64,000 nt of DNA from Pocillopora damicornis (GCF_003704095.1 NW_020843601.1:124001-188000); one strand, 5' to 3'; positions 4,549-26,140 are shown, counted from the first letter of the stretch. Notes: generated by a model not told the origin, from the letters alone. Translations and numbers: made by a program.

Positions 4549-5353
4549 GACTGACACCTACTACATTTTGAGATTATGATTTATTTGCCATATCAATTAT
4601 CATGTACGTGGTAGCATTTGAGGATACTGATAACAGGCTGCTTGCTCTACATCACTGAAACAGTAAACATTGCATGCTCGCATTTCATGCAAGGCATAAT
4701 CATTTATCTAGCTTGAAAGTTGAAAAAACGTTACATCTCACCAAACAAAAATCAATTCGTACTCAATAGGCATCAAAGTAGGCGAGCAATTGTGCATGTT
4801 GTTCATTCCCATATTCTGGTTCGTTTATATTTATCAATTTATTTTCCCCACTTGTTCTAGAACCTTTGCAAAACTTTGAATATCTTGGAAAAGACTTGTA
4901 TCTTTATGAAAATATTATTATTCTATAACTGTTGAAAATGGAGGCACCGAGTCAAGAGTTAACTTATGTCACCTAAAGCAAAACTTAAGGTTGTTGTTTA
5001 AAAAAATTGCTGTGATAACTTGATATGTCAAGTGATAACGATACGGTGCTTCAAAATGCAAGGGTTTGTTTTTTATCAGCAGCTGTTATATAATGAAACA
5101 CTGATCCAACGAAACACAATTGCTGTAAAGTTTCAAGGAGCTTCTTTGAGAAACACAAAAATATCAACAGAACGGGATAAGATATTGATTTGAGATAATA
5201 TTCTGCATCTACGTTAACACGGACCACGCAGCTCAATTAAAAAAAAGCATTCAAACTCATATGGTAGCAGCGAAATGTGTGACAGAGTGGTTTTCTGTTT
5301 TGGTCGTTTTTTTTTCTTTTTTTCTTTTTCGCCTTGCAGATAGAAAATAAAGA

Positions 5354-5641
5354 TAAGGAAGCAGTCATTATTTATCTCCAGAGGAAAAGGTTTGGAAATT
5401 TTGGGGGTTATCCCATGGTTCTCTGGGGAAAAGGAAGGGGATCACTCGTCGTCAACAGATTAGTATAAAAGGGGGGGGGGACTTTTACAAATTTACTGCC
5501 AGTGAGCGGGGAAGGGAAATAAGAAATTGCAGAGCCTTAACGGTGATCAGGTACATTTTATGGTAACACAAACCAGAATCCTCCAAATCCCCCTCCCCTC
5601 CCCTTCTTCTCCTCAGGCGATGAAAAATGACTGGTCCCTGA
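5354..5641. mobile_element. MITE with terminal inverted repeats of about 23 bp; partial related copy near 34120-34305
   Basis: Left end taaggaagcagtcattatttatc; reverse complement of the right end tcagggaccagtcatttttcatc. Internal sequence (catggtt...gggga..ggaagggga...gtcgt..aacaga..tataaa) recurs at 34.2 kb. Confidence 0.65.
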
Positions 5642-5721
5642 GAAAAGAGCGCAAATCACACATGCCTGGTTTAGCGGCAAACCGACAATTTGATGTTTCT
5701 GAATGCATATGGATAAATGCT

Positions 5722-8700
5722 CTATGTTTTATTCACTTTAAAACGAATACTTGCTAGTCCCACATCGTTTCCAGCATAGCACCAATAATATCCAAAGTCA
5801 TCATCTTTTTTAGGCGTGAATGTCAGTTTACTTAGGTTTTCTGTAGAGTTCACACCGACTGAGACCTTTGCGCCTTCTCTGATCCACGCGAACACTGCCG
5901 GAGGTTTGGCATCAACTGCGCATGTCAGAGTAATGTTTTGACCAACTCTTGTTTGAACAGTAAGATTTGAACTAGCTTTCTGGTTGTGGTACGGTTTATC
6001 TAGTAAATATAATAAATGAAGCAGGATTAGTGAACACTTCACACGATGGCGCTACCTTCTCTCCTGCTGAGGCGAATTGGAAAATGGCGTGGGTCTTAGT
6101 GGACTTTTTTTGAGGGAGAAAAAAAAAAGAGGATAACTCAAACTGAAGCTAAGGAACGAAAACAAGAACTTATATCGTCTCAATCCTCAAGGATCATTGG
6201 GTTCATAACTTTAAACCACAAATCACGGTTGAGATGCGGGCGCCCATCTATGCCCATAACTCCCCAATATACCCGAGCTAAAACAAGGTAGCAAAGAGCA
6301 AAAACGAGAACCAATTTTGGCTCCACCCTCAAGTAACATTGGGTCCATAACTTTAACCCACAAATCACGGATGAGATGCAAGCGCCCGTCTATGCCCAAA
6401 ACTGCCCAATATCCCCGAGCTAAAACAAGGTATTATAGGAAAGAGCTGTCCATCACTTTAGCTAGCTAATATATAGTATTATCAGTATTATCGATAAATG
6501 AAATGATTATTTTTTTTAGTATCCAACGAACTTGTTGAAAGATTTCCACTTATTATTATGACTAGATGGACATTATTTTGATATCTTCCTTTCCTGTACC
6601 CTTAATTTTCCTTGTTGTTTGCTATGCAATACTTATGATGTCAGTTCTGAAAATTTGGTATCAGATCAACTAATATTCCTCGAATGATATTTTTCCTTAT
6701 TCTAGTCACTTTTCTACTTGATATCGTAAAGTGATATTCTGTCTTTGTTTTGAAAGGGTCGCTCTCCCGCTTAGCTGAACCCTTTAACTCCCAAGATCTG
6801 ATTGTTAACTCTTCTCTTTAGCTGCTTCACATTTCCTTGTAAAGTAACTGGGACAATTTGGTGTTAGATCAAGGAAACAACTTTTCCCTAATTAGTTTGA
6901 GTATTCTCATTATCTACTTGCTGGAGAATGTATGGATATTATAGGGAGAAGTAAAATGTTGATCACTTCTGGGTTAACTAAGGCCAATGATGAAGCATTT
7001 ACGGCACCCGTGCAATTGCCAAACGCCAAACCGAGTCTATGTTCACCGGAGAGGCCTTTTACGTTACCCAAAAGTTGACCGCCTAAAACAAATTCTAACT
7101 TAATCTGATGATAACAGAATTATATGCCATCCTGCGCGGGAAAAAACCAACAGCACTCTTTGGTGTACTTACAGCGCACGACCCTGACTAAGAAACCTTC
7201 CGACACGTTACCAGCTAGGTTCGTAGCCGTACAGTTGTAGGTACCAGCTTGGCTCCGCTGGATGCCTGAAATTCTGAGCACTGTGGCTTTGTTGGGCAAT
7301 ATCCTACCATTGTGCATCCACAACATACTCGGCACAGGGTTCCCAGTTGCTTTGCAGCTCAACTCTACCGTTTGTCCCTCTACACTATCTATAGTCCGGT
7401 TCGATCGACGGACGAGTTTTGGTGGATCTGTGAACATGAACGCAGAAAATATTTATTTCTGTGACTTATTGTAGCGTTTCTGAAGTGAATATTCATACTC
7501 CGATGGGATAATCATAAATTATTTCCTTAATAACCTTACTAAGTGCTTATCTAACCGCATTAAGTGATTGACTTTTAGAGTAATGAACAATAAGTATCGA
7601 CCATGAAAAATTAAGACTCAAATAAAATTGGTTTAAAAGTGAGTCGCCCAATCCTAACGGTTACAATGCACGCTGGACTCCGCTTCAAGAGGTCCGAGTC
7701 CGAGCGCTAACTGGATTTTTTAGTCGTGTTCTCGGTCAAAGCACTTAGCTCCTGTCATGACCCTCTTCACTCAAGGGTATAGATTCCCAAACGCCCTTCC
7801 CCCCACCCGCTTATGCAGAGGGAGAAGATATTATCTTAGTCGCTTAAGCTTTTGGAACTGAGATAACTTCACGCGGCAAGGATCTCTTGACACATTTGCA
7901 ATACTAAGGCATATACAATATACCGTCGGAGCCAAAATATTACGACTTGGCATCGCTGAAAAGAACCTTTAGAAAAAGTGAGATCAATTTCTCTCGTGAA
8001 TGCTTGTGATCCACCTCCCCCAAAAACAAACTCAGGCTCATATCTGCGTATACCCATATGAGGCTTCTGTTATGGTGAAATCAGGAGACGGACATGAAAA
8101 TTCGATAAGTACACTTATGTGTATTTGCAATGTGAAACACATTTAAAAAGCATTCGGAAAGCATGTAAAAAAATGTCAACCCGTCCAAACAGTGTTACCC
8201 CATGCCTTTCAACTAGTACTTGAAATCTGCATGCAAAAAGAAAAAGAAACACTAACACTCAGGCATGCCTCTCAGGACCTCCTTTTTTTCTTGAAAAGTT
8301 TTTAAACTCTGGCCCCCTGAGGAGATTCTAAGTAATAACTATGAGTGCTAGTTCCAAAATTTGATTGGGAATAATAAGTTAATTCTTGAGACAGAATATT
8401 CTGCTTGCACTTACCAAGGACGATAAGTCTTATTGGACTACTTTTGAAGGTCTCCCCGTACACTACCCCTATACAACCATACGTTCCGTCATCTGTGTAA
8501 ATCGCATTTTTCAAGAGAAAATCTAGCTGACATCTTTCGCGGCTTAGTGTACCGGACCACACAGCTCTGGAGATGACAGAGCCTGGTACTTTTGGGTTGG
8601 ACCAAACATTTTCTTTGCTATCAACCGTAAGGAATTTGTTGCCAATATTGCCATAATTATCGGTCTCTGCTCCCCAAAAGACTTGCTCAAAGTTAGTCCA

Positions 8701-9551
8701 GTCCTCCTCGCTGCCGAAATTGCATTCCCATCGGAAAGTGGCGTTGGATCCCAAGTCAACGAACAGGGTTTTTTCTGGCTCCTTCATAAACTTTGTCTCT
8801 GTATGAACTAGACAAAAATAAGCATATGTTATTTAAGGCTTCTCTTTCGTAGTGCAGCTAACAACGTGGGTCAACTTCTGAGTACATTCAACGTCGCTTC
8901 TCTCTGTGCCGTAATGGCATCAGGTGTTTTTCAGCTAATTTCAGTAGAATCCCCATATTTTGCTTTAGAAAGAAGCGATTAAGGGTGTTGCCACTCTCGT
9001 AGATGGGGCGCCAGTCCATTGCGGGTAACCCCTGATATTTTGCCGTTATTCATTTATACTCCCAGGGAGTGCCTTGCCAAAAAACAAGGGCGTGGCTAAG
9101 GATGGGGGGGGGGTCCTTGGGGTGCCCGTGACTCACCCACCTTTGTGAGTCTTTTTTTGTCACATTCAGTAAAACACGGCGTCGAGGTCGACATGACAAT
9201 CTGTTGAGTACCCTTTGTTTGACACAGTATGACCTCCTCCCCCTTTGAAAAATCTTGGCTACGCCCCTAAGCAACATAACCTGATGACCCCACAAAGAGT
9301 CAATACCAGATTTATCGACTAGGAGTCCAGCCACCTTGTTTCCCATAACTCTACTCGAACTGAGGGTTACAGATATCTCTGCAGCTGCTTACAGATTCTA
9401 CGTGTCTGTAACACATATTTTCTTTTCATTTTCCTTAGCTCCAACAACTGGAAACGTAAATAATGAATCGCGAGGGTGACTTACGGCCGGCAGTCAGGGT
9501 ATGGTGAAGGATACAGCTCAACAAGACTGTTGCTACTTTAATGATCGCCAT
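5722..9551 (-). CDS. Secreted Ig-superfamily protein, signal peptide + V-type + 2 I-type domains, 330 aa. Coding exons 9551-9485, 8807-8415, 7427-7173, 5999-5722
   Basis: Signal exon MAIIKVATVLLSCILHHTLTAG. All three introns have GTAAGT donors and YAG acceptors and are phase 1, as is typical of Ig-domain exons. Exon lengths 67+393+255+278=993 nt give one open frame. I-set motifs: VEGQTVELSCKATGNPVPSMLW...QAGTYNCTATN and VGQNITLTCAVDAKPPAVFAW...DDFGYYWCYAGN. TAG follows the last G strand; no TM segment seen. Confidence 0.85.
6185..6432. repeat. Intronic direct duplication of about 105 bp, period 142 bp
   Basis: cattggg(t/c)cataactttaa.ccacaaatcacgg...cccgagctaaaacaaggta at 6195-6290 and 6337-6432. 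Confidence 0.9.
6776..6977. mobile_element. piggyBac-like MITE, same family as 36558-36714
   Basis: aaccctttaactcccaagatct...tcacttctgggttaa; shares internal sequence (agctgc..cacat.tccttgtaaa...atttggtgttagatcaag) with the 36.6-kb copy. Confidence 0.7.
7650..7872 (+). mobile_element. Degenerate tRNA-derived SINE
   Basis: tRNA-like head (ggtta..gctggactcc...ggtccgagtccgagc). Body is similar to the reverse-oriented copy at 8925-9345. Confidence 0.5.
8925..9345 (-). mobile_element. Degenerate tRNA-derived SINE interrupted by a MITE (9085-9269)
   Basis: Reverse strand reads ggctggactcc...ttggcaaggcact...gtataaatgaat...ggggttacccgcaatggactggcgccccatc. The nested element has inverted termini caagggcgtggctaaggat / aatcttggctacgccccta. 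Confidence 0.55.
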
Positions 9552-9649
9552 CACTTTAAATCCAATTTTGGTGGACAGAAAATCTATATCAACCTGGAAA
9601 GAAGAAACGGAACGGCCACACACATAAGTGACTGTATGTAATTACTTTA

Positions 9650-10635
9650 AAGCTGTTTAAGCACTGCAGTAGGCTGCACACTACTGACGCATGACAGGAG
9701 CCCATAGTAATGTGCTTTTGCGCTTGATGATTAGAACATCATTTTCCAAAAGGGATTTCCTTTCCCAATGATATACTATCTTTTTTATGAAAATATCATA
9801 AAGCTATATAAGCCCAGAGCTAGACTTGTGTAAATCTACATGAGAACAGCTGTAGGCTACACACTATTGACGCATGATGATAATACCATCATTTTCCAAA
9901 AGGGATTTCCTCTATTAATGATATACCACCCTTTTCATGAGACTGTTATAAAGTAAAATAAGCCCTGCGCGAGACTTATGTAAAGCTATATGAGAACAGC
10001 TGTAGGCTACACACTATTGACGCATGATGATAATACCGTCATTTTCCAAAAGGATTTCCTCTATTAATGATATTCCACCCTTTTCATGAGACTGTTATAA
10101 AGCTAAATAAGCCCAGCGCTAGACTTATTTAAAGCTATATGAGAACAGCGTTAGGCTACACACTACTGACACATGATGATAAGACCATCAGGCTATACTG
10201 CTGAATACCCTGCCACCATTTACATGTCACTGAACAAGAATAGCGTCTACTGTGTTATACCTGGTTCTTGAAAGCCTCACGACACATGTAAATGAGGTGG
10301 GCCAAAGTGGCAGGGTATTCTGCAGTTACTCCATGCCATCATTGTACAAAAGGGGTTTCCTCTATTAATGATATACGATCTTTTTCATGTAACTATTTTA
10401 AACCTATATAAGCACAGTGGTAGACTACTGTAAAGCTATATAAGCACAGCGGTAAGCTACACACCATTGATGCATGATAAGACCGTCATTTTTAAAAAGC
10501 GATTTCCTCTATTAATGATTAACTTATTTTTTCATGTAACTGTTACAAAGCTATATAGGCACAGTGGTAGACTGCACATTATGGATGCATGACGATAAGA
10601 CCATCATTTTTAAAAAGGGATTTCTCCTTTTAGTG
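9650..10635. repeat. Tandem repeat of about 150 bp (5-6 diverged units) in the 5'UTR intron/upstream region of the first Ig gene
   Basis: tgagaacagc..taggctacacact..tgac.catgatgataa at 9841, 9991 and 10140; ccatcatttt...aagggatttcc recurs through to 10625. Confidence 0.92.
10191..10335. mobile_element. Small hairpin insertion (MITE-like) inside the 150-bp array
   Basis: Inverted repeat actgctgaataccctgccac (10197) / gtggcagggtattctgcagt (10326), plus inner catttacatgt / acatgtaaatg. Flanked by a duplicated ccatca (10185-10190, 10336-10341). Confidence 0.75.
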
Positions 10636-13600
10636 ATCCTCTGTATTTCGTTTTTTCTACTGGTATTCATGAAACGGTAAGCCACCCATCAGATTTGAGA
10701 CAAACACAACTACTCTTTTTTCTCGGTGTTTTGTTTGGGCCATGTACAGTGAAGAAGAGTGAGTCACACTAGTCATTAATATGTCACATGATATATCATC
10801 ACTAATCACGCGATGAAAAATCTGTCAACAAACAATTGTTATGATAAACAATCAGTGAAAACAAAAGAGGTGATTCTACGCGAACCGTAAATGCCTGACT
10901 CAATAAAAAAAAAATTCATACATTTCTCAAATTCAAGTAATCTGACTCTCTGTTTACTCTGTAAATTTACTTTTATATGTTAAGGGATTTTAAAATAACC
11001 TCGAAGTTCAGTTTTATCTGATATAGCAGATAAAGCACGAAAGATAATTAGAGAACTTTATTGACATGCTTGCTAAAAGAAAACAAGGGAACTTTTCTGA
11101 TATACTCATCTTTCGGTCGAATCTCTGCTATTTCCCTCTTTGCCACTGTTTTTTGTTAATGTAGATATATGTATGTATTTTTTTTTTATTATTATTATTT
11201 TTTTTTTTTACCTTTCCTCTACATTACATGTGGTACGATTGATAGTTTTATGAACCATGCATATGAAATGGAGGAGAAAATTTTCTACTATTGAGCGAAG
11301 ATAAGTAATGAGTACAATTAAAAATTTCCGTCTCCATGTTCAAGCATTTTCGTTATTTACTTTTTAGGAAAACAAATTGAGAAAACTGTGGCAGATATTT
11401 ATATCACACTTTCTCTCGCTCCAAGAAAATAATGCTTCTTCACGCGCGCGTTCTCGTCTTCTAACGGAACAAACCTCGGTCTTTAGCTCTTTTTCTTACG
11501 AGAATCTAAAGGTCCTCAACGATACCTTGGACTGGTCGATGCTTGTCACGCATAACATTCTTACTATCAGATTGTACTGACATGTTACGTTTAAATGGAA
11601 ATCAGATAATTTACGAGAAGCTACACAAAGAATTTCGTCTCTGAAAAAAATCTCTGTCTTGAAAAGCATCAACCCTTAAGTTAACTCTTACCTTCAGTGA
11701 AACGCATCAATTTTAGCCTTTGGTGACTCCTTGCGACACAACGCGCAGAGTAAGAATAAGCTTTAAGGTGTTCGTGCCCTGATACAGGCGAACTTTGTCC
11801 CATCACTCTTTGGGGTAAAAGTATCTGTATGCGTGGCACCTGACAGACAGTAGGCAACCTGTTGAAAAAGATTAAACCAAGTAAGCTCTGAGCTATTCGG
11901 TTGATCAGTCGTCCAAGGAGAAACTGACAAATCGTCTCCTAGGTACATGAGATAAATCAAAGAGGAACAAACACTCAAAGCTAATACACACTGCCTTTTG
12001 GTTTGTTATCTCTGAAAAGGATTCATTCATACTATGGAGTTGAATCAGGTGGAGGTTGCACCATTGCAACTTAAAAACAAATATTTTTGGGGGTCCTTTG
12101 TGAATCAGGGAGATCTTTCACCGACCCAAGTGGCTGTCAATATTACAAAAAAAGACGATTGAGTGAGGTTAAGAAGGCTAGCGCTTTTTTGTAACAATCC
12201 TTGAAAATTGGACTCTTGCCTTCCGACCAAGGTTTGTAAATTTACGTCGCGATATTCAATAACTAATTATTTGAAGATAATGGGAACATATCACTCCTAA
12301 GATAGAGATGGAAAAAGCAATTTGAGCAGTGTAAAAGCTCCACCTTTCGGAAGTCCCGCAGGAAATGAGAAACTTGTGTGAATTGAAAGTTAACGTTCCC
12401 TTTTTTTTTTGGAACGGACTCTGGGCCGCGGGGGGCAATGTCTTCTTTCATGCGTTGGCAAGCTTATTGTTAATGGCCATTATAATGTCTGATACATTTC
12501 GAGGTTGTGACCCAAAGAGTTGGAAATTAAGGAGCAAAGGAGGAATACAAAATAGTACGTGCTCACGAAAACGAGAGCAAAAATATTTTTGTCAAGTGTC
12601 GCCTTCGTGACCATCACAATGACGTTTGATTCCAAATTCTGTCTATCAGAGAACTGAAAATGAAAGCACAAAAGATCCCATGTGAAAAATCATACACAGA
12701 TCAATCACTCCTCACAAGTTAGGTCATCAAAGCTAAACCTGATGTTTTCAATAAAAAAAGGGAGCGGAAGTCAATGGCGGAGTTGTTTTCCGCAGAACCA
12801 TTTTTTATTACGTACTCATTTTTACACACCAAACAAAAATCCGTTTTTAACTCTATTCATGTTATGTGATCTAAGTCTTTCCGGTAAAATTTTACTCATC
12901 CTTCTCCTTTAGTTACTTACAGCGACGTTACGTGATCAATCGAGCTGTAATTCAACTTTTGGGCACGCAACAATTTTAGAGGGCAGCTGCCCGTGAGCTA
13001 TCGATCGAAATTTCTCCTCAAAAACGAGACCAAGTAGCAGCTCACTCAAAGGAAAGTCTTTCCACGTAGCAGAATCAATATTCGAGTGAATGTGTAATGC
13101 GGAATTATTCTATTTGTTTTAAAAAGGGGAGTTACAGCAAGATAGTCTCTGAGCCTTTCAAGTGAGAGCCATGTTTATGTCGCCTAAACAAGACAGAGGT
13201 GCTCCTTTAATTATTTGATGATCTATGTTTGGACTGCTCAATTAGGCCAACTGAGAAGGATAGCAACAGTTGAAACGACCTTGAGTCTTGTATTCCAAGT
13301 TCCAGATGAAATGTTCGGCCGAAAGTGATCTTCTGTGTTTAGAGAGAAGAAAAAGTTGGCACAAGAGGACATGATCATGTTACTACTCTTGTTATTAAGA
13401 TTGAGTGACTGATTGATTTTGTTCGGTAGACTGATTTCTGGATTGTTTGGTTCATTTCATAATCTATCATCGGTTTCTTTGCTTATCTATTCATCGATTT
13501 ATTCCATTGAATTGAATTGTTAATTGTTTGATTGATCGCTTGGTTGACTGATTGATTCATCAATTGTTTACCGACTTTTATTGGTTGATTTATACCAACA

Positions 13601-15370
13601 TTGTTCAGTCATCCCATATTTTTACCATTTTCTCATTCATTTTTACTTTGAAGAGCTACAAATGGGGCAACCTCATCATGTTCCGTTAGTTGCTTCCTGA
13701 AAACATTTAAGATGTCTTGTCCACGATCACGACAAAGTGGACACAAAAACCGGCGTTCCTGCATAATTATTGTTAAATAACATAAAAATTAGCAAACTTA
13801 TTTTGAAGACAGAAAAGTATGGAAAATGACGATTATATATTGAAACCATAGAAAGAGGTCTGGGGTTCCATAATCTTAACCTGGAAAGTAGAAACTTTGC
13901 TTTGGGTATCTTAATTTGCAACATTTTTCTCAGCCAAAACCAGTAGAGGATAAACTTTATTCTCCCTTGTCAGAACCTTTTCATGGCACAATTGGATAAT
14001 TTTCATTTTTCACCCGGCAAACCTTTGCCAACCCTTGGGTTTGTAGAAAGGAATAGTTGCGAACACTGGCACCAGTCAACGAGTGAGAACATTCAACAGC
14101 AACGAAAGAAAACCCATTCTTGTTTTCTTTTGACTTGGATTATTTATTACTGCAGCAAATTTACAATCAATGTTTAAATTCAATTTACACAATATTTATC
14201 TACGAAAACAATGAAGAGATTTCTTAAACTTGTCAAGACTGATACATTGCCATTCTCTTGGTATGCGTTGCGATAGGTATATTTTGAGCTTATATGCCTT
14301 GAAGAGCATGTTTATAAGGATTAATATACAAACATGACTAAGTGGCTTGTCACTATGGTCGGCGAGAAATCAAAAAAAAGAAAACCAACTTTTTATCTAC
14401 ACTTTACAAATACCTGGTTGTCCCAGTATGATACAGTCGTATAATGTGTTTTTGTAAACTAATAGTTACAAGTTCATGTCTCGCTAATTACTGTAAAATG
14501 AAAAACTACCCCGAAATGCCAAATAAAAAAGAAAAAATTATAGCGTAATCGAAGTCGTGTTGTCACTACACAAAGTGTTACCGAAGTATTGAACATGCTA
14601 CTTGAACCAGATCACTGAGAGATACGGACTCAGCTTGGTCGTTTGCTCAGTTATTAGCCTGAAAATTGGAAAAAAAAAGAGTAGAATTAATAACATCAAA
14701 ATAGCTCAAGTTAGTTAGGTTTGATATGTAATATTTGGGCTTTTTATTGCGCTTTTGATTAACATGCGAACTGTGAGATTCAGAGCAAAACTTACGATTT
14801 CCTCTTGTGTTATCGTAAATTATTGTACGAGCGGCCATTTTGTAACTGCGAAACACGAAATGGAGCGAGATCCTTTAATTTCAGTCAAGCAAGGAAAATG
14901 ACTTTTTAAAGCCCGCTTAAACAGCGCGCATGCCTCTTCAAAGGTCTGCAACATTGCTCAGGGTTAGGGTTAGTAAATTCAATGTAACGTAAACTTCATT
15001 TTCAATTATTCATCAATAATTTCATCACTCGCATGTTAATGAATGCTCATCGTGATTGATGAAAAATTATCAGAGATGCAAAATGCCAGCAGACACTAAC
15101 TTTAAGTGCGGTCCTCTCCTAATCGGCTCCAAAGGTTGGTTATCCTTATTTACAGTCTTAAGATGGCAAAAGCGATCATGTCTGTTCTCATGCCAAACAC
15201 TCTCAGCCACAAAGACGGAGCATTCCAAGATGGTTGGTTAGTTTCCCTGATAGATCTGCGGCACCATTTATACTCTTGAGTGTGAATTTGTGAGAGCACC
15301 GTATCCTACCCAAAATTAATCTTAAAACATACACTGAAGTGATAGCTTAAATGGGTAACAGAACTTACCA

Positions 15371-16515
15371 TTACGTAACTGTTAAACGAAATGGTTGGCT
15401 AACTATGTCTACTCCTGCAATGTCCGCATCGCAGCCATAAACGAAGTTTCCATCCGATCGCTGCACATCCGTTAGAGTGAATTCCAGCTTGCACCCGGTT
15501 GAACTGATGGTTCCAGAATAACTAATCCGACCTCTGAGACTCTTCGGAAGCCTCTTATTGATAAACAAAGAAAGGATGCCCTTTGTAACGGTTATGTATT
15601 TGTTGGTTACGTGGCCGCTGTCAACTGTCCCCCAGACAAACTCATTAAACTCGGTCCAATCCTGTCTGTTTCCAAATTTAAATTTCCAGACAAACGTCAC
15701 TGAATCATTCACAGCAACATTGACATTGACTGGAGGTGTGGCAGTAAACCGTGTGTTAGAATGGACTGAAAGAAAGAAACAGATGATTTTCAAAGACTGT
15801 AAATATAAAAAAGTATTCCAAAACTACCCAGTTGGGCTACAGTATCCACTCTGAGTATCACTCTAACGTACTTTCACGTACTCTTCTTGCATAACCAGTG
15901 CCATCATTCTTAAAATGCACTGTGCAGTGATCAACAGAGGTGTCACCTGCGAAAACTCAAATTTTAGTGACAACTAGTGGTTTTTTCTTTCTATCCGGGT
16001 CTTCAAGGATGTTTTAAGCATGTGAAACTGGTCAACATGTAGACGTTTGGATGTCAGTTCCTTCGAATTTCACTACAGGAGAAGTTAGTAGACAATAAAC
16101 TTTTCTGTTATCTGCTGATCTCTAAATCTTGCTATTAGATCTAAGCTGTCGAGACCCAATCAGGTCTGAAAAGCTCCCCACTCTCAGTCCCTACTTTATC
16201 ATGATGAGTCATGCGTGATAGTTTTCAGAAGTGTTTCATTTATTATGGTCAGCCCCTTTATACCTCAGCTGCCTCTGCAACCGTTGCAATGTAGCTGATA
16301 TTGGCGAACTTCATTGGCAGCTGTTTTCTCATCCATCTCATCACGTATTGTGGAATAAACATGTTTTCTTTTACGTAAAATCCCCGTAGAAACTTCGTTT
16401 TATTTCAACAGCCCAAAACAAAAAACAAAACAGTATATAAGGAAAACTTACCGCCGTAGACAAGGCCAAAGGTAGAACAAAGCAGAAGAACAGAGGCTCC
16501 CAGTGTAAACGACAT
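15371..16515 (-). CDS. Secreted single V-type Ig-domain protein (about 152 aa), paralogue of the V domain at 8415-8807. Coding exons 16515-16452 and 15765-15371
   Basis: Signal exon MSFTLGASVLLLCSTFGLVYG + G|GTAAGT (phase 1); acceptor CTTTCTTTCAG|TC at 15765. The domain aligns by eye with gene 1 (TFxW..FG..DWT.F...WG..NK..TV..P.S..R..GT.S..C.L.F.L...D...YGC...S.P.RL.V). Stop TAA lies 2 nt before a GTAAGT donor; probable 3'UTR exon from 14658 with AATAAA at 14143-14148. Confidence 0.8.
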
Positions 16516-17499
16516 CTTTGTGAAAGTTTTTCAAATCTCTGAAAAATAAAAAGGAAACGAAATTAATTAGATGAGTTTCTGAACTTTCTTAAATTGATAA
16601 AAGTAAAGATCAATACTTGAACGTTCATTGGTCCAAACCCATAAATTTGGGTGGCTACTAATTTTGTCTATGACAAAGACATCATGCATGCCACTTCAGA
16701 CCACGCACCAAACATTTTGTACTTTGAACCCGCGTCACATTTTATACTTTGAACCCTCTGTGTTTGCATTTCAAACAGAAATAATTTTAATCGTCTTTTA
16801 ATAGCAGACGGTCGCCTTTTGGATCACTTCACTCGCTTGTATCGAGGATGATGGTAGCCAGTAGTACTCTTCGAAATGGAAGGATGTTCAAGACACTGGA
16901 AAGTGTATACGGGAAATTAGTTTTGAAAATCGTGCTTGGAGATGCACGAGAATAACACTGTCTAATGCAACAGGAACCTTACTCAGAGAAGGAAAATGGG
17001 TTGCATTAGGTGGAGCTCATAAAAGGACTTCATAAAAATCATTCTGCTGAAAAGGAATGGAAAATTCTCGAGCGAGATATTCTATGATGGAACTTAGAAC
17101 CTCGCTTAAAGTTTTGAGTACGGCAGGTACATAATTTATGCTCGTACCTTTATTGTGCATTTTTCATACATAGGAATCGTCTTGAGAGAGAAATATAGAA
17201 ACAATTTTTCATATTTGACAACTTTCGATAATCACCCCGCGTCTCTTAAGAATAATACTGTTTTTTTTCATTTGTTTACTAACATAAGTACGCACATGCA
17301 GTCAAGTCAGCCAAGTTGTTAGGGAAAAAAGATCTCTGACAGACGGGCGATGATTTTAAATCAATGATTTCGAATAGAAGTTAAATAAGCCTTTCTCAGT
17401 CATACATTCAGTGTAGTTGGTGAAGATCTTTCAAACATTATCAGGGTATGAATTGGTCCTCGTTTATGGGTGACCTCAATTACACAATAGACCTTGTGC

Positions 17500-20200
17500 C
17501 AAAAGATTGTAGCGGCGATATTCCCTGCTTTTACTCTCAAATGACTGCATCAACACTTAACTCTGGCCGCTCTAATACACGGTCATAAATTAATGTGTAT
17601 GATTGCTTACTGGTAGTTATATTCTTAGTCAAATTCCAACCGCTACCTTTATTCTCTTGTAGATTACTGTGTGCGTCATCACAAAATATTTTAAAGATTT
17701 GAAAGTCTGGGCACTGTACCAAGGTTAGTCAAAGCACTCTATCTTTTACAAGCAAAGTCAATTGACTCTTATATGGTTACATTTCGTTCTACGAGTTGTC
17801 ATGGAATCTATTAAGTAAGGAGCGTAAGGTCGAAGTATTTTTAGGCTCAAATGAGGTTTCAAGAGGTTAATCACAGAGAATTACAGTTTATTGAATTAAG
17901 ACATCTATCCTAATACCTTTGAATGTTTGATTGCCACTAAAAATGAAACATTCACTTGGTATTTTGTTTGTTTGTGTTTTTTCTTCTGTTTTATGCCATG
18001 TTGATTTACTTTTCCATAGGTTCTGTTTTTGTTTGGTTTTTTCCTCGATTAATTTCAATAATTCTTGATATTTCAAGTGTATGCATTGTTAAAAATGTTT
18101 TGGTCTCAGTCGTTGACGTGAAATTTGTTCTTGTCTCGTACGTTAGTGATGTCGTTTCGCCGTTTATGACATTTACGAAACGATGACTTCATTAATGTAT
18201 CATATTTGCATTATCTTTGTGGTGAAAGCCTATATCGCTGTTTCAGATTTACCGATTTTCTTGAATGGCGAATGGATATTGTTGCTGTCGTATTCCTTCA
18301 AATATTGTGGTTTTGACCACAACTCAGGTTAAAACACATAATCAGAGGAAAACTCCAGTAATTTGACAGAAAAGTAAACACTCTTATTATCCATTGAAAA
18401 TACATTTGTTAATTCATTTCTTACTGAGCTTGGACATGTGTATTACATAACTCGGATGTTTCATCTTTTCCTTAGCCAACACACAGGTTTATTTGCCCTC
18501 TAGAAACCTCTCATCAGATTAAATCGGACAACATTGTAATGCTATACAGCGAGAAATGCATAGAATAAAAATGTATGGTTGCAGATAGCAACGAGATTCG
18601 AACTCAAGGTATTTATTTCCTTAATTGAATAAAAGTTCGTTCAACCTTTCTCCTTATTTAAAGAGAAGCGAATACCTCAATAAGCGAAGATAGTGAATTA
18701 CAACATTTCAAAACGATGTGAACCTAGGACAGATAATTCTCCAACTTTTGGAAAAAAAAACAAAGCAAAATATGGAAATGAAAAAATACAAAAAAAGGCA
18801 AGATAAGGCCCCTACTCATAGCCTTGGGTACCATTCTCCCCCTTCCGCACATTCCCCCCCCCCCCCTCCCAATCTGGAATCTTAATTTCATCGCGGAAGA
18901 TTTTTTTATTCCGGTGTTTTGTGTTAAATGCTGAGATTAACGAACGAAACGTGACTGAAATCCACCGTGGGCAAGTGACACTTCGTTTTACTGTCAGCAG
19001 CAATGCCGGAGACTCCTTAGGGTCACTTACGGCATGTAGCATCAACAATTAAAAATGCGGGTGGTCCACCATTTGAATCCCACAGGATTTTAATCACCGG
19101 ATACTTCCTCGACACGAGATCCTGACTGACCACATTTTGATCGTTGCTCACGGCTGTATCTATTTCATTTCTTGTATTTCTTGCCCTTTTCACATGGAAT
19201 TTTGTTGTTGTATTCCTTACTGACTCAATACTACTCAGCAGTATGAAGGCTATTTATTTTGGCTCAGTATCATTTTCCGTTAAGCTTGTTGTTTTGTCTT
19301 TGTCGACATTTAACATTATCAATCTTGCCTGGTGGTCGTTCTGAATTGCAAGGAATGGCTGAAGACTCTTCTGAGACAAGCCATTTAACTCTTCCTATAC
19401 AAACCATGTTTCCTTTTGCGCTTCGTCTGAAAATGCGTTTTACTGTTGTTTCGAAAGTTGTTTTGAATTTTATCGTTCAAATACAGCTATTTTTGGACGA
19501 CATGACATTGACCTATAAGTATCTTAGAGCGAAACATTGTTTGCAAGATATGTTGCTAAAATGATACATTTCGCAATTTGTTTCGGCATGTATGTATCGA
19601 ATTCCCTTGAAGCACATTTGGAGCGACCGGATGTAGAGAGAACGAAAGGAATAAAGTGCTTAGAGTCCTCCATAAGGCTAACGGTCATCAACTTTAGTTA
19701 CAGAACAAAGTTTGATAAATTTTTGCTCCGAAGAGTTTACTATCAAGGCTTGATCTGAAAGAGACAAAATCTCTATTGTTCTCGTTCCGTTGTTGTTTGG
19801 GCAGCGCGCGAACGAACACGCGCACGCTCATAATATGTTATATGTAGTATATATTTTTACAATCTTCAACAAAGACTTTATTTCTCGTGCGTGGCTAATC
19901 CTCAAAACTCCACAAAATATGTCCAAAGGCTGTAGTATAAGGTGCTCCATAGGAAACTGAGGATTGAGATTTCTTGATAAAAAAAATCGGAGAATATTCG
20001 AGGACGGAACAAATTCCTCCGAAGGAAACTGATCGCTCTGATTGTTCTTCTCGACTTTCCGTCGAGCTTTTATCATTACAGGTAGCAGTTGTCAAAGCAC
20101 AGGATTCATTCAGCTGTTCAAAACGCAGGTCGTCTTTCAGGACGAAAACAAAGGAGATAGTTGTGTTCGCTTAATGTACGTAATGTGATCGCCGAGGACG
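17500..20200 (-). mobile_element. Heavily decayed, internally deleted L1/Tx1-like LINE
   Basis: Colinear minus-strand remnants read by eye: ORF1-like LDGKSRR..N...ILRFFLSRNL (about 20.0 kb) and SFRSLYIRSLQMCFKG (about 19.6 kb); endonuclease-like DHQARLIMLNV...LTEND.EP and KILWDSNG (19.1-19.35 kb); C-terminal LKYQELLKLI and a zinc-knuckle-like FACKR.SALTNL/LVQC (17.7-18.1 kb). No RT core seen. Confidence 0.4.
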
Positions 20201-20480
20201 TAGGGATTTTTTTTGCCCTTATCTGACATTAAGGCCATAATTCTAATGGAATAATGGGAAAAAAAGACGACCTTTACATAACTTGGATATGTTCCATTCA
20301 CGAAAGAAAAGAGAAATAGTTTTACGATGAAAGTGCTATTCATTGGCATCTAAAAAATATCTGGCCTGTCTCAGACACACTTCTTATCTCTCATGGTCTT
20401 TGCAAGAAATATACCGCGGTGATAATTTTTTCCTTTTTACTTTTAAAAAGACTAAGAAGCTACATACAATTCGTTTTTAA

Positions 20481-21140
20481 GCGTACTTTCGCTCTCGTGG
20501 ATCATGTACTCTATAGTTTAACCAAAGACTAAAGAAGCAGCCCTAGATTAAATTATTGCATTGCTTTGTTGTGCGTGAGGTTATCCATGTGGGAGTATCC
20601 GGAGGCGTGGACAATAATCACGCAACGAATGTACTTGAATAACAAAGATAAACAGAATTACGATCAGATTGACTCATGCCGCAAATGCAAAATTATAAAT
20701 TAAAGGTGTTTGTAGGTAAGAGAATCTACCTTTTCGAATTTCCTTTGCATTTAGACAAATAAAAAGAAGAACTAAAACGGCAACCGGCGATAAATTCTAA
20801 TTTTCTCTTCGATGAAATAACGAAGGCCAAGAAACTCTTTTAATACGTTTCCACGCGTACTTTTGTTCTCGTGGACAATGTTCTCTAAAGCTAGACTAAA
20901 GACTAAAGCAACCGCCGTAGTTGAAGTCATTGCGTTGGTGTTGTTGTGCGTGAGGTAAGCCGTGTGGGAGGAACCGGGGGCGGGGACAGAATTTAATAAC
21001 GCAACGAGTCCATTTGAATTACGCAGATACACAGAATGACAGTCAGAATTAGTTCATACCACAAATTCAAGCTGTTAAAGGTCTTTAAATGTACTAATAT
21101 CTCTGTTTTTCAATTTTCTTTGTGTTAAGACAAGTTTAGG
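20481..21140. repeat. Diverged tandem duplication, period about 375 bp
   Basis: gcgtacttt.g.tctcgtgga...aaagactaaag...ttgttgtgcgtgagg...gtgggag...cgcaacga...acagaat begins at 20481 and 20855. Confidence 0.85.
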
Positions 21141-24100
21141 GGAGAAATAAATTGGCAATATACTCGATAAATACTCAAGAGCGTCATCTCAGAAACTCTT
21201 TCCACTCGCCGAAAAGCTCTCGCTGTAAAGCATCGTTAAAAGTACAAGTCAAAAGGCAGGCATATCATCGGCAATGTGCATAGACACCTTTACGAGTTCC
21301 TTCAGAATCGTGAATTCATATTGGTTTGTAATGCACCGAGATCCAAAGATGACATGTTGCTAAGGAGTGAATCTCTCGCTACGTTGTAAACGGTTTTATG
21401 GTACGAATCAGTCTAGGAGAAGCGTAAAAGCCCCGCTTAAGCCAAAATTCAGTTTTAAAGTGATGGAATTTGAAGTCAGTAAGAGCTCACGTAATCATAA
21501 AGCTTTCTTGCTTCGACGTCAACAGCTGGTACACTCAAGTGCGACTTCCCTTTTAGATGATCAATAATCAAGACATGCTAGACAGTTAGTACATTTCTAC
21601 TTGTTTCTTTTAGGTACATCCTATGTTTTCATAGATAACATTGCACAGAATTGTAGTCTGGAGACAAGGTGTGTTCTGTTGAGCGTGATTCAAGATGATG
21701 TGGGAGGTGTTGGGGGCGGGGTCGACTCAGCTAGATTAATAGAACGTTTTCATTGTGCTTGTCACACACCTTTGAGTAATCAAAAAATGTAACCCTTGCA
21801 ATTATTTAATCAGATTAGATTTGTGGTGTACATTCAGGTCTGGTAATCACGCGGATTTTCATTTCCCCTTATCTTTTCTGCCTGCATTTATCGGTGCATA
21901 TGTGGCAGTTCGAAGCAATTAATTTGTGACATGAAATGGGACATTTTGAAATGTCGAATGAGTTTGAACACAAATCAGTTATTCAAAGCTCTTTATGTAG
22001 AAACTATTGCAAAAAATGACTTGAGGTAGTCCATGAGTTGAGGAATGATTACATCGATTTAGCCCACAAAATTTGCTATTTTTGCATTGCACTGCAATCA
22101 TCTATTTGAACTTGCTTGTCGATACTTTGCCAAGGTTATACGTAGATGAGTCATGAACTTCTAAACCTAGCAGACGAACGTGGCGGATAAACAACCATTG
22201 CATCCGGCAGGAGAACGAAGAGTGAAAACTTTCTGAATGAAAAGGGGATACCTACTCATCCTACATTGTTGAAAAGACTGTAGAATGGAAGTCATAACTA
22301 CTTGTATTCAAACCTGAACAGTGAAGCGTTAGTTTTGTAATTTTTATCGAATTTTTTTTTTTTGCCTTTTTGATCATTTATTCTGGAACATTCGGCGCCT
22401 TCATCGAAAAACTCGCATAACAATTGAGCTCAGAAAGCCGGTCATAATGACTCGTCAGAAATCCAATTATCATACTTATGCTTTCATACTTTTATGCTTT
22501 TCGAGGGGTGAATCAACACTTTCACCGTGGGGTTAATGTTTTGAGCCACCGGAATACTGTTGAAATTCGAAACTTTTTTACAGCGCGCTCGCTGGGAAAG
22601 ATGCCAATGTCAGCCTTTTAGAGGTCTTGGAATGGAGCTCGGTGAATTTTTGTTGAATATGTCTGCAATGTCTGTTTTTATGTAACAACTAGACGTGTGT
22701 ATGATGGAAATGCAGACACGATCTTTCGGGGTTCTGACCACAAGCATATTTCAGGGTCTCTTGCTTTAGTGACATCCCCCAGGCACCTGGTGTATGTTAG
22801 CCATCGAGATAAATGATATTGCCATCAACGTCGCAGTTGTTTTTTCTCTTATTATTATTCCCATTATGGAAAAATGTATCATTTTCTAGTTATTGCGACA
22901 GGATTCTCGGTAGAGACCACTAGCTTTTTGAAAGGCCAGCTTGTAATCCACTTGCTACGTAATATAGTTCAAGTGAAGATTGAAGTGACTCTGATATCAG
23001 CAACATGCTCGATTACTACAAGAAAAGTTGCGTAATATTTGATGTGGGACATAGTGTTTATTTGCCGTGCCCTTTCTTGTTCGTTCCAGTGCGTGAAAGG
23101 AAATAGATCAAGACAACAAGATCTCTCATTTTGGTCTTGAAAGAATCATGGTTTCGGGATCAACTTTTTTAAATGTCTTGGAGATGATCTTCTTTGTAAT
23201 CAAATTAAATTCTTTGTAAATGGAGTAGGAAATTGCTTTGGTCCAGGCTTAAAAACGGCACTCCCTCACGACGATCGCTGGTTCACAACTGATACAGACA
23301 AATACCCATTTATTTTCAAAGTTTAGGAAACTGTAGAACCGGATGGATTGAAACTCCCACACATCTTGTTTGGTCGACACATACGAGCTTGCACGAAGTC
23401 CTAACAAGTTTTAACATACTCTTTTCAAAGAGTGAGGTTTTCGAGCTCAAATCTACCCAGTTGTACGTCATATAACTGTAATTTTTGCGAGTCAACTTGT
23501 ATCAAAAAATGAAGGATCTCTTTTTCTTAAGCCATGACAATCGCATTTGATTTCTTTCGTGATAATAGATTAAAGTCTACTAAAATCCACGAAATACCTT
23601 TTTTCGTCATCCCTATGTCTGTCTAAAATTGAAACTTTGTTAATTTTGCATCGACTTTTGTTTCAGAGCCAATGGGGATATTGTACATTGACAATAGCTG
23701 GCGTTGTTGTTGTTGTTGCGACTGAATTTAATTGTTCTTTGTAGGAGATTCTGGAGGTGTTGTTCCATTTTATTACAATAATGGTATCACGCTGGTACAG
23801 AAACCTTCGTTTGATGGTTAAAAATTGCCTCGATCTTCTCAAGTTCGAGCCATTACTCAAAACAGCTTCCACGAAAATTTGTGCGCTTTTTTGGGTTAAA
23901 ATCTTATTGTTTTACGAAACTGGGGCACAAAAAGGATAAGGCGTGTGCAACGTGACGGGATCGAAACATGACTGGCTCAGTTGCCACGGAGCTCTGCGTT
24001 AACTTACAAACAAGGGTAGGGAAGAATCTTTTGAAATTAGCGAACGCATACAACAAATAAACTAAACAATTACAAGATTGCTTACCCTCGACGTTAAAAG

Positions 24101-25559
24101 CTGCTTGTTCACTCAGAAGTCCAGAAGCTGAACGAAATTACCTGTTGTTGTTGTTGTTACATCCGAATTTATTCGTTTTGGAGGCGTAGCTGGAGGCGGG
24201 GTCATATCGTATTACCCAATGATAAGTCTCTAGTGACCGGTCCTCCATCGATTCCTCTTCCTTGACCATGATTGGTTATAGTGAGTTCAATTACAAAATT
24301 CCAGTTTTTCTGGCAGGTTCTTGTTTTTCTTATCAATGCCTCTTTGCTTTTTTTTGTCATCGATGATATTTCAAAGTTATTTTGCAAGTTAATACGCAAA
24401 ATGTGCTGCTCGTCCGGAAACGGCGGCATCTCCGACACCGCACGCAAAGTCGCAGCTTTCCGCGAAATATTTGGGCTCGATAATAGGGCTTCTATAACAC
24501 TCACATCTTTCATTTTTCGTGAGCATAAACACAACTATATTTTCGTTCCTTCTTTTGCAATTTCTTATGGCACATCGAGTAAATCTAGGGCGTTCCCTCA
24601 CATTTAGAAGGCAGTTCCCGCCAGGTATGATGCAAGGATCTTACAGAGAAGCTTTATGGGGAATGAAGAGGCTCGCTCGTGCTGAATTTCTCCTCCTGTT
24701 TTTGCCAAATTTACAACAAGGAAAACTGGCATACATACAAAGAACTAACGCGAATTAACCTTCACCTTCTGTACTCATACTGGCCTTAACGATATTAGCA
24801 AGGAACGACCTTGACAAGATAGTAAATGTGATTTACTATTTACATGTGTCGAGTTCAAATGTTCGCCGCGCAATTTTACTTTCCATGGCTAAATTTCCCC
24901 GAGAAGAGCGCCAGAGATCCTCGATTTTCAGCGTTTCTTCTCGTAGTGGTGCACTATTTACCCCACGGGCGTTAAGTGGCCTTTCCCTCAACAGTCTTCC
25001 CCCCCCCTCCAGCTAATCTCCCACGTAATTAAGAGGGACAGGGGATGTTACAACCTGGAGTTGCCGCGTAAGGTTAATCTTAATGTTTGTTAGGAAGATC
25101 TGTGACAAAAAGTTAGCCTTCAACATAACTTTGGTTTTCCATGTTGCTCTTATTTATTTTATCCATTTCATATTACAGTATTATTGTTATCAGCGTTATG
25201 ATTTTATTTTCTTGCATATGTTGTCCGAAAAACTCAACCAGACGACGAAAATGTGGGACGACAATTATATAGATGTGCCAGAATTTTTTCCATTCTTGTC
25301 GAGAAACCCACCTCAGTGCGAACTGTTAAACCACTTATCCTGAAAATGTCGTCTGACAAGGTTAAAAAAACACGTGAGGGGAAATTACAAGTCAAAACAG
25401 GAAATCGAATAGATTAGTACAGATTACGAGCCCTAAACGTGTAAAACGAAGAATTTTAAAGTTATCAGACTTGGCTGAAAACAATTTAGCGAAGTCAACG
25501 ATAAATTAAAGAACAAATCAAAACCGAGGGAATTTAGATGGCAATAATCATTTGTGTCA

Positions 25560-26140
25560 CTACTTTTTGTGGTGCAATGGTTATAACTGGTGGCCGATTT
25601 TTCTAAACCGTTACCGGAAAAAAACCCTTGGTACTTAAAGTTTCCTGAATCATGGACTTGAACTTGACTTAAGTGCATCACTACATAGAACACCCAGAGA
25701 CTCTAACTAATGCGATGAAAAATTATAATTCGCCGCAAGATTAAACTTGCTGGTATCTGTTTTAGCACTAAAATCTCAAACGCTTACGTGTTTACTGGCC
25801 TCCCTTGAGAGAATTTAATCCGCAAACAGCTTGCACTGCACGAAAATCAGGAATGAAAATCGTCCTGATAAGTCGCTGATATTTCCTCGTGGATTTTTTT
25901 CTTTTCCCTAAGCAACTGTTTGCCAGATTACATCGACTTATGTATTTCGTAGTATGCGGAGTTATTTCAATAACAGCATTACTCAGCCTGTAATCTATCT
26001 ACTGATTGTGCTCAGTTGTAATCACTTCTCAACTTTCGGTAATCGGTATCTTTTAGGGTCATAGTTAGACAAGTTACCTTGACTTTTGAACTCCTCTTAT
26101 AACCGAAGTAAATAATAGAAAATCAAGTCGGAGAAAGTTT
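25560..26140 (-). pseudogene. Probable decayed third V-type Ig paralogue (V-exon remnant about 25560-25987, possible signal-exon remnant about 26078-26140)
   Basis: Minus-strand translation KQIPASLILRRIIIFHRIS*S...VVMHLSQVQVHDSGNFKYQGFFSG resembles KRLPKSLRGRISYSGTISSTGCKLEFTLTDVQRSDGNFVYGC of the 15.4-kb gene. It has in-frame stops and frameshifts and no ATG. Alignment by eye only. Confidence 0.4.

Follow-up and report, generated by a model that had tools for sequence, protein, structure and literature searches.

Gene A and gene B are two secreted immunoglobulin (Ig) genes of the coral Pocillopora damicornis, lying between positions 5,722 and 26,140 of a stretch of 64,000 nucleotides (GCF_003704095.1, NW_020843601.1:124001-188000). 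This stretch corresponds to contig C236:124001-188000, contains 305 N and is referred to below as the window; positions are those of the window unless a contig is given. Both genes are expressed as spliced RNA and, judging from their exons and those of their neighbours, they are truncated paralogues of genes encoding receptor tyrosine kinases with one V domain, two I-set domains, three FN3 domains and a transmembrane segment, having begun as partial copies of such receptor genes. We lean, with moderate confidence, towards the view that their products would act as soluble modulators of this receptor system. A preliminary description, made from the sequence of the window, had instead proposed a cluster of fast-evolving soluble recognition molecules related in kind to the Alr allorecognition proteins of Hydractinia; its observations were partly confirmed, and its interpretation is partly supported by the results reported here.

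Gene models, paralogy with receptor kinases and the V domain

Gene A encodes a signal peptide of 22 residues followed by a V domain and two I-set domains, with a coding total, summed exon by exon, of 990 nt or 330 residues and every junction in phase 1 (Table 1). Its three introns (8808-9484, 7428-8414 and 6000-7172) read CT..AC on the contigs, that is, GT..AG on the minus strand. The model was checked with RNA contigs from four runs of four studies, placed on the interval 5200-11199. The joint 5999|7173 was present in all four runs, the joints 7427|8415 and 8807|9485 in three of the four (X1, X7 and X17 for the latter), and one RNA contig links the start of the signal exon through the V exon to the I-set exon. 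The contig covering the last Ig exon runs unspliced across the stop as far as 5200, with 850-990 nt more in runs X2 and X7. Since the stop lies inside an unspliced terminal exon, the spliced mRNA of gene A encodes a protein that ends with the second I-set domain; the possibility, raised in advance, that these exons are the ectodomain of a longer receptor therefore does not hold. In the poly-A runs X1 and X17 the word depth of the gene A exon contigs, taken as a rough guide only, was far above that of the intron contigs. The N-terminus of gene A is hydrophobic (Kyte-Doolittle mean 1.72) and its I-set exons match Pfam Ig_3 and I-set with E values from 1e-10 to 3e-16. In agreement with the preliminary description, no transmembrane segment was found in either mature protein, as neither contains a 19-residue stretch with a Kyte-Doolittle mean above 1.0.

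The evidence for gene B comes from a spliced Logan contig of 2702 nt (L018), which blastn aligns to the window as four minus-strand blocks with 97.5-98.1% identity. No processed copy of gene B was found in the genome, which holds the split copy alone, so that L018 does not derive from a processed gene. The product (P0181, 152 amino acids) consists of a predicted signal peptide leading straight into the V domain, and its stop falls where it had been predicted. The stop codon, TAA, sits two nt ahead of a GTAAGT donor, which is still used, now for an intron in the 3′ untranslated region (3′UTR). The two intact secreted Ig genes on the same strand that the preliminary description had outlined, one with V and two I-set domains and one with V only, are thus borne out by gene models and by RNA, the splicing of A by joints in three to four runs and that of B by a four-exon contig. 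The 5′UTR intron that had been assigned to both genes is confirmed for gene B, where L018 shows it to be 7.5 kb long, and is putative in gene A.

A search of the whole assembly (234.35 Mb in 4393 contigs) identified five close V exons, four of them on contig C236 and on the same strand, and one, belonging to gene E, on contig C1122. Genes A and B come last in a tandem cluster of four genes on one strand, and the other two, genes C and D, lie downstream, 9.6 and 41 kb beyond the left edge of the window. In genes C and D two I-set exons come after the V exon, with the junction phases seen in A, and tblastx showed that both genes extend further, through three FN3 domains and a transmembrane exon, into a complete, FGFR/RET-like tyrosine kinase with the catalytic loop HRDLAARN. 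In gene E only an exon resembling the second I-set exon was found after V, with the same junction phases, and the gene goes on to FN3 and transmembrane exons. By contrast, tblastx detected no FN3, transmembrane or kinase exon downstream of A or B, including the interval between the gene A 3′UTR and gene C, and gene B lacks the I-set exons as well. The ends of the coding regions fit this relationship: where genes C, D and E close the second I-set exon with a phase-1 donor (T|GTAAGT), gene A reads two codons further to TAG, and gene B stops by the ancestral donor of the V exon. The position of both stops near receptor donors shows that A and B began as partial copies of receptor genes. Furthermore, each is 34-42% identical to every other V copy, so that the truncated copies are old.

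Table 1. Exons of genes A and B and associated features of the locus (window positions, unless a contig is named)
Feature	Position	Strand	Evidence and remarks
Gene A signal-peptide exon, coding part	9485..9551	-	ATG 9551-9549; 22 codons + 1 nt; phase-1 donor 9485|9484
Gene A V-set-like Ig exon	8415..8807	-	393 nt; phase 1 to phase 1; RNA joints at both ends
Gene A first I-set Ig exon	7173..7427	-	255 nt; Pfam Ig_3 3.1e-16, I-set 6.3e-14; RNA joints at both ends
Gene A second I-set Ig exon, including stop TAG 5724-5722	5722..5999	-	Pfam Ig_3 and I-set; RNA joint 5999|7173
Gene A 3′UTR, continuous with second I-set exon	5200..5721	-	contig pieces 5200-5999 and 5337-5999
Gene B exon 1, 5′UTR	24086..24570	-	L018 bases 1-484, 98.1% match
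Gene B exon 2, signal peptide	16452..16539	-	L018 bases 484-571; ATG 16515-16513; phase-1 donor
Gene B exon 3, V-set-like Ig	15369..15765	-	L018 bases 571-969; stop TAA 15373-15371; family hidden Markov model (HMM) E = 3.6e-50
Gene B exon 4, 3′UTR, at least 1.7 kb	12927..14659	-	L018 bases 968-2702, 97.5% match
Spliced transcript exon	9439..9633	+	antisense to gene A signal exon; loose ends 9437 and 9633; AG and GT good
Gene C V exon (L002)	C236:114014-114382	same as A, B	own-genome search
Gene D V exon	C236:82623-82988	same as A, B	own-genome search

Over the V exon, A and B share 34% identity, in keeping with the earlier remark that they share a framework yet diverge. Pfam gave no match for either V exon, nor for P0181, at E <= 1. 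When seven V copies of the genome were aligned, the invariant positions were F-x-W in strand B, the Gly after the C-strand aromatic residue, the Arg before strand D and the D...Y.C motif of strand F. The position of the B-strand Cys is occupied by Trp in all seven copies and the F-strand Cys (Y-x-C motif) is kept in all seven; at the C-strand aromatic position (Trp41), the five copies of type 1, among them A and B, carry Trp and the two of type 2 carry Phe. The V-set pin of A and B, formed by the B-strand Cys, the F-strand Cys and Trp41, is therefore incomplete, one of its three residues being replaced, and an extra Cys is found at the start of strand E in the V domains of A, B and C. An AlphaFold2 model built on the V alignment reached a predicted local distance difference test score (pLDDT) of 90.5 and a predicted template modelling score (pTM) of 0.83, and has C′ and C′′ strands, which lie at 48-56 and 61-63 in the interval from C to D. 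The top Foldseek matches of this model were all V domains (antibody VL, CD8, nectin D1, CAR D1, PD-L1 IgV and MPZL1, with template modelling scores of 0.6-0.73), the V alignment profile reached solved V-set chains (antibody VH 3.3e-8, JAML 4.7e-8, sodium-channel beta-2 8e-4), and the language-model look-alikes of P0181 were V-set clusters. The coral V domain is thus predicted to adopt an atypical V-set Ig fold that Pfam misses, and the non-canonical character noted in the preliminary description holds. The decayed V exon that had been reported upstream of the two genes was, on the other hand, not recovered: the family HMM, run on open frames and on frames read through stops, revealed no third V exon in the window, the open reading frame (ORF) at 25433-25693 scored E = 17 with the family HMM, and the best other score (E = 0.61, open frames) lay outside 5722-26140.

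The same V domain occurs across stony corals. The V profile search returned 318 proteins at E <= 1e-3. Among these, XP_020632401 of Orbicella faveolata ('uncharacterized protein LOC110069245', 1189 amino acids) carries two I-set domains, three fn3 domains and PK_Tyr, with FGFR and RET as the nearest kinases among solved structures, and XP_022796344 of Stylophora ('neural cell adhesion molecule 1-B-like', 835 amino acids) has the same ectodomain and a transmembrane segment without the kinase. Proteins of about 240 amino acids, composed of a signal peptide, V and I-set and devoid of a transmembrane segment, are represented by a Montipora RefSeq model and by many Logan contigs of about 1.5 kb; the Montipora protein (XP_068686351, 'pregnancy-specific beta-1-glycoprotein 2-like', 241 amino acids) is a short secreted form with the same V type. 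The names of XP_022796344 and XP_068686351 are automatic labels. In a maximum-likelihood tree of V domains, genes A to E and the Orbicella and Stylophora proteins fall in one type-1 clade (support 97/98), and the secreted forms of about 240 amino acids make up a clade of their own (support 92/94) with A and B outside it. Within the tree, whose backbone is unresolved, gene A stands alone on a long branch, with no close relative outside Pocillopora, and gene B pairs with a single sequence. The separate clade of short secreted forms suggests that secreted versions arose more than once, by truncations that seem independent. In the literature searched we found no published description of this family of V-I-I-FN3-kinase proteins. 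A second, more distant V subfamily is located on contigs C2727 and C1647 (L006-L008; P0031, P0044), with members that include a receptor kinase of another format and a protein combining collagen-like repeats with an N-terminal membrane anchor.

Variation, selection and the role of the secreted proteins

Diversity was estimated from 50 Tara Pacific metagenome scaffolds carrying the locus, which were fetched by means of five variants of the gene A ORF and match the locus at 97-99% identity; each exon was analysed alone, and nonsynonymous (piN) and synonymous (piS) diversity are simple Nei-Gojobori estimates. A and B are colinear across the set, and every sample covered, 50 for A and 49 for B, has intact acceptors, donors, frames and stops. 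Counted by exon, the GT donor of the gene A signal exon is kept in 50/50 sequences and the gene A stop in 51/51, the AG and GT of gene B exon 2 in 41/41, and the frame and stop of gene B exon 3 in 50/50.

The V exon of gene A has one nonsynonymous and seven synonymous changes (piN/piS 0.08), with one amino-acid variant among 51 sequences, and its nucleotide diversity is 0.0035 as against 0.009-0.017 in the gene A introns. In the first I-set exon the changes are 4:9 (piN/piS 0.14). Both exons are under strong purifying selection. The low diversity of the V exon is also seen in its ORF, which forms a 90% cluster with 34 variants: among the 15 variants listed, which stand for about 390 contigs, there are two rare variable positions in 125 coding codons versus 8 in the 36 codons read into the intron. 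The second I-set exon of gene A (11:3, piN/piS 0.65) has a diversity equal to that of the introns, and so does the V exon of gene B (21:7, piN/piS 0.70; nucleotide diversity 0.0143 versus 0.014 in the B introns), which encodes 21 distinct proteins among 50 sequences with an amino-acid diversity of about 1.3%. These two exons evolve near the neutral rate with their frames kept. Strict neutrality of the open frame of gene B is nevertheless unlikely, as the V exon is devoid of indels and stops, of which unhindered decay would lead one to expect about 3.4 and about 1.0, respectively (rough joint P 0.013). Two sequences 76% identical to the A V domain (P0002 and P0183, locus L069) were considered as divergent alleles and rejected, all their differences being of the C-to-T, bisulfite-like type. 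A frameshifted copy of the gene A V domain (P0003) was seen in a single ENA contig and is either an error or a rare null allele.

A different picture was obtained for the neighbouring receptor gene C. A word-index search with its V exon returned many clusters at 48-85% identity, none of them dominant. Ten Tara scaffolds hold both the C and the A V exons; on these, the C V exon shares 90.7-99.7% of its DNA and 76-99% of its protein sequence with the reference, whereas the A V domain is identical save for one Ser/Asn change. Among ten sequences (the reference and nine scaffolds, one partly covered locus being excluded) 43 of the 122 residues of the C V domain are variable, and in all eleven sequences piN (0.078) exceeds piS (0.046), while the exon after V has a piN/piS of 0.06. 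In this small sample the V domain of gene C is hypervariable, in direct contrast with that of gene A. The introns flanking the C V exon are 4-6% diverged, more than those around gene A.

Taken together with the paralogy, these data make it plausible that A is a soluble binding module carrying the outer, ligand-facing domains of the receptor family, and that it would act outside the cell on the recognition system of the receptors, either by trapping, or competing for, a target of the receptors or by serving as their invariant partner. Gene B could be a looser version of the same role, or be on its way to losing function. Several points weigh against this reading. The putative decoy or modulator role is drawn from architecture and position, as no family member has a known binding partner, and a complex prediction for the gene C and gene A V domains gave no verdict, which counts neither for nor against binding. 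The near-neutral amino-acid change in the B V domain and in the second I-set domain of A means that part of the encoded sequence may not matter. Furthermore, the Tara samples mix several Pocillopora lineages, so that piN/piS blends polymorphism with divergence; the exons were handled singly in all searches and in folding; and the RNA evidence consists of assembled contigs, which are silent on transcript ends (the 5′ end of gene A included), strand and expression level.

It is unlikely, though worth retaining as an alternative, that A and B are independent secreted Ig proteins whose job is unrelated to the kinases, such as matrix or cell adhesion or, in the manner of an opsonin, binding to a conserved surface of microbes or symbionts. 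The 34-42% identity to the other copies and the long isolated branch of A leave room for a new specificity, an invariant A V domain would suit a conserved target, and secreted V-domain proteins with immune roles are known in other invertebrates. Nothing positive points to a particular target, however, and the retention in the cluster, on the same strand and with the same exon plan, is explained at least as well by a system shared with the receptors.

We regard it as improbable that B, perhaps together with the last domain of A, is a functionless transcribed remnant of the cluster duplication that drifts towards loss. The neutral-like piN/piS and intron-like diversity of exactly these two exons would be expected of such remnants; gene B lacks all that follows V in the receptors, and the donor retained just past its stop is now pointless, and the lack of a close relative of A outside Pocillopora in the tree points the same way. 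Against this stand the age of the copies, whose frames, splice sites and stops are nonetheless intact in all samples, the indels and the stop expected in the B exon and not seen, the strong constraint on the first two Ig domains of A, the presence of both genes in RNA in spliced form, and the recurrence of short secreted forms in other corals.

The proposal of the preliminary description, that A and B are themselves soluble recognition molecules, polymorphic and evolving fast, which would determine allorecognition or bind symbionts or microbes in a variable manner, is very doubtful: the excess of nonsynonymous changes in the B V exon, with three alleles each at positions 33, 70 and 107, the frame of B that stays open despite change and the hypervariable V domain of gene C, which gives the locus as a whole a recognition-type look, are outweighed by the near invariance of the A V domain, by piN/piS below 1 in both genes, by a diversity of B that equals that of its introns and is not raised as balancing selection predicts, by the lack of coincidence between the variable positions of B and those of gene C (odds ratio 0.97, p = 1), and by the lack of a membrane anchor on A or B, without which neither alone could mark cell identity. 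Low polymorphism, which had been named beforehand as the outcome that would speak against the proposal, is what was found for gene A. Since A barely varies between colonies, A and B are not themselves self/non-self markers. The idea of allorecognition does not fit A, is at best weakly open for B, and is a better fit for the gene C receptor. What stands of the suggested recognition cluster is therefore that it holds a receptor of recognition type; A and B do not form a separate soluble family within it, but are truncated paralogues of the kinases.

We know of no established molecular basis of coral allorecognition. In a wider and speculative version of the soluble-modulator reading, the cluster would let corals tell self from non-self through receptor kinases whose V tips are hypervariable; A would be their invariant soluble partner or antagonist and set how readily the system responds, and the soluble V domain of B would be subject to diversifying selection at particular sites; we consider this combination improbable as a whole. 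Taken alone, A and B are ordinary secreted Ig proteins. Their locus nevertheless reveals an anthozoan V-set domain, missed by Pfam, that is used in three formats, namely in receptors with a kinase, in receptors without one and in secreted proteins, and in Pocillopora the hypervariable receptor copy beside an invariant secreted copy offers an internal control for testing the receptors in colony recognition. The locus also points to a candidate soluble regulator that can be produced as a recombinant protein.

Other transcripts and repeats of the locus

A transcript of the plus strand overlaps the signal exon of gene A (Table 1). The next intron of this transcript, 9634-16807, is GT..AG on the plus strand and encloses the coding exons of gene B; the following exon starts at 16808, and the exon upstream of 9439 lies outside the window. 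None of the three frames of the exon 9439-9633 is open, each being interrupted by stops. The loose end at 9633 had been considered as a 5′UTR exon of gene A, which was rejected on the plus-strand orientation of the implied intron.

Several repeats accompany gene A. The stretch 6600-6999, in its third intron, is a repeat element with many loose ends that reaches word depths of thousands in each of the four RNA runs, and looks like a highly transcribed dispersed repeat. Upstream of the gene, 9700-10600 is made of degenerate direct repeats with a unit of about 150-175 nt, of which RNA-run contigs skip whole units (9888|10039, 10041|10216 and 10475|10594), suggesting copy-number variation between colonies. 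A short repeated element at 9050-9346, found also at 9144-9252 and near gene E on contig C1122, translates to a peptide of the G-G-G-H-T-V-S type; in many Tara haplotypes, and not in the window, it forms an ORF of 188-213 amino acids opposite to the strand of gene A. The composition profile furthermore showed strongly skewed, GC-richer DNA at 48-54 kb of the window.

Comparison with known systems

The Alr proteins of Hydractinia, with which the coral genes were compared by published description and not by sequence, are membrane proteins whose domain 1 adopts a V-set fold without both pin cysteines and nearly always without Trp41 (PMC9546547), followed by a cysteine-linked I-set/Fn3-like stalk and often by a tail with an immunoreceptor tyrosine-based activation or inhibition motif (ITAM or ITIM) (Huene et al., 2022, PMC9546547). 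These authors were aware of no V-set domain outside bilaterians besides Alr (PMC9546547). The coral genes resemble Alr in belonging to a cnidarian, in their tandem cluster, in the order V then I-set with one domain per exon, and in a V-set domain that domain searches miss and that carries an aromatic residue for the B-strand Cys. Unlike domain 1 of Alr, the coral V domain retains Trp41 and the F-strand Cys; a transmembrane segment, a cysteine-linked I-set/Fn3-like stalk and an ITAM or ITIM tail are all missing from A and B, and their membrane paralogues end in a tyrosine kinase. The extreme polymorphism of the outermost domain in Alr1 and Alr2 also differs from the low polymorphism of A and B. 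The likeness to Alr suggested in the preliminary description is one of theme; kinship with Alr is not demonstrated.

Closer parallels are found among corals. The V-I-I-FN3x3-transmembrane-kinase receptors (XP_020632401 and genes C and D) share with A and B the atypical V domain, the I-set domains and the phase-1 exon plan, and C and D share the contig and strand; they differ in that A lacks FN3, transmembrane segment and kinase, B lacks the I-set domains in addition, and the V domain is invariant in A and hypervariable in gene C. The kinase-less Stylophora form (XP_022796344) has the V domain type of A and B. The short Montipora-type forms are similar in having a signal peptide, V and I-set and no transmembrane segment, yet belong to their own clade, which excludes A and B.

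Among vertebrates, the decoy receptors DcR3 and osteoprotegerin are soluble receptor paralogues with genes of their own. They belong to the tumour necrosis factor (TNF) receptors, whereas the coral receptors are Ig/FN3 tyrosine kinases; if the analogy held, A and B would share a ligand with their receptors. Like DcR3 and osteoprotegerin, A and B are secreted, carry outer domains of a receptor only, and are made from separate genes rather than by alternative splicing.

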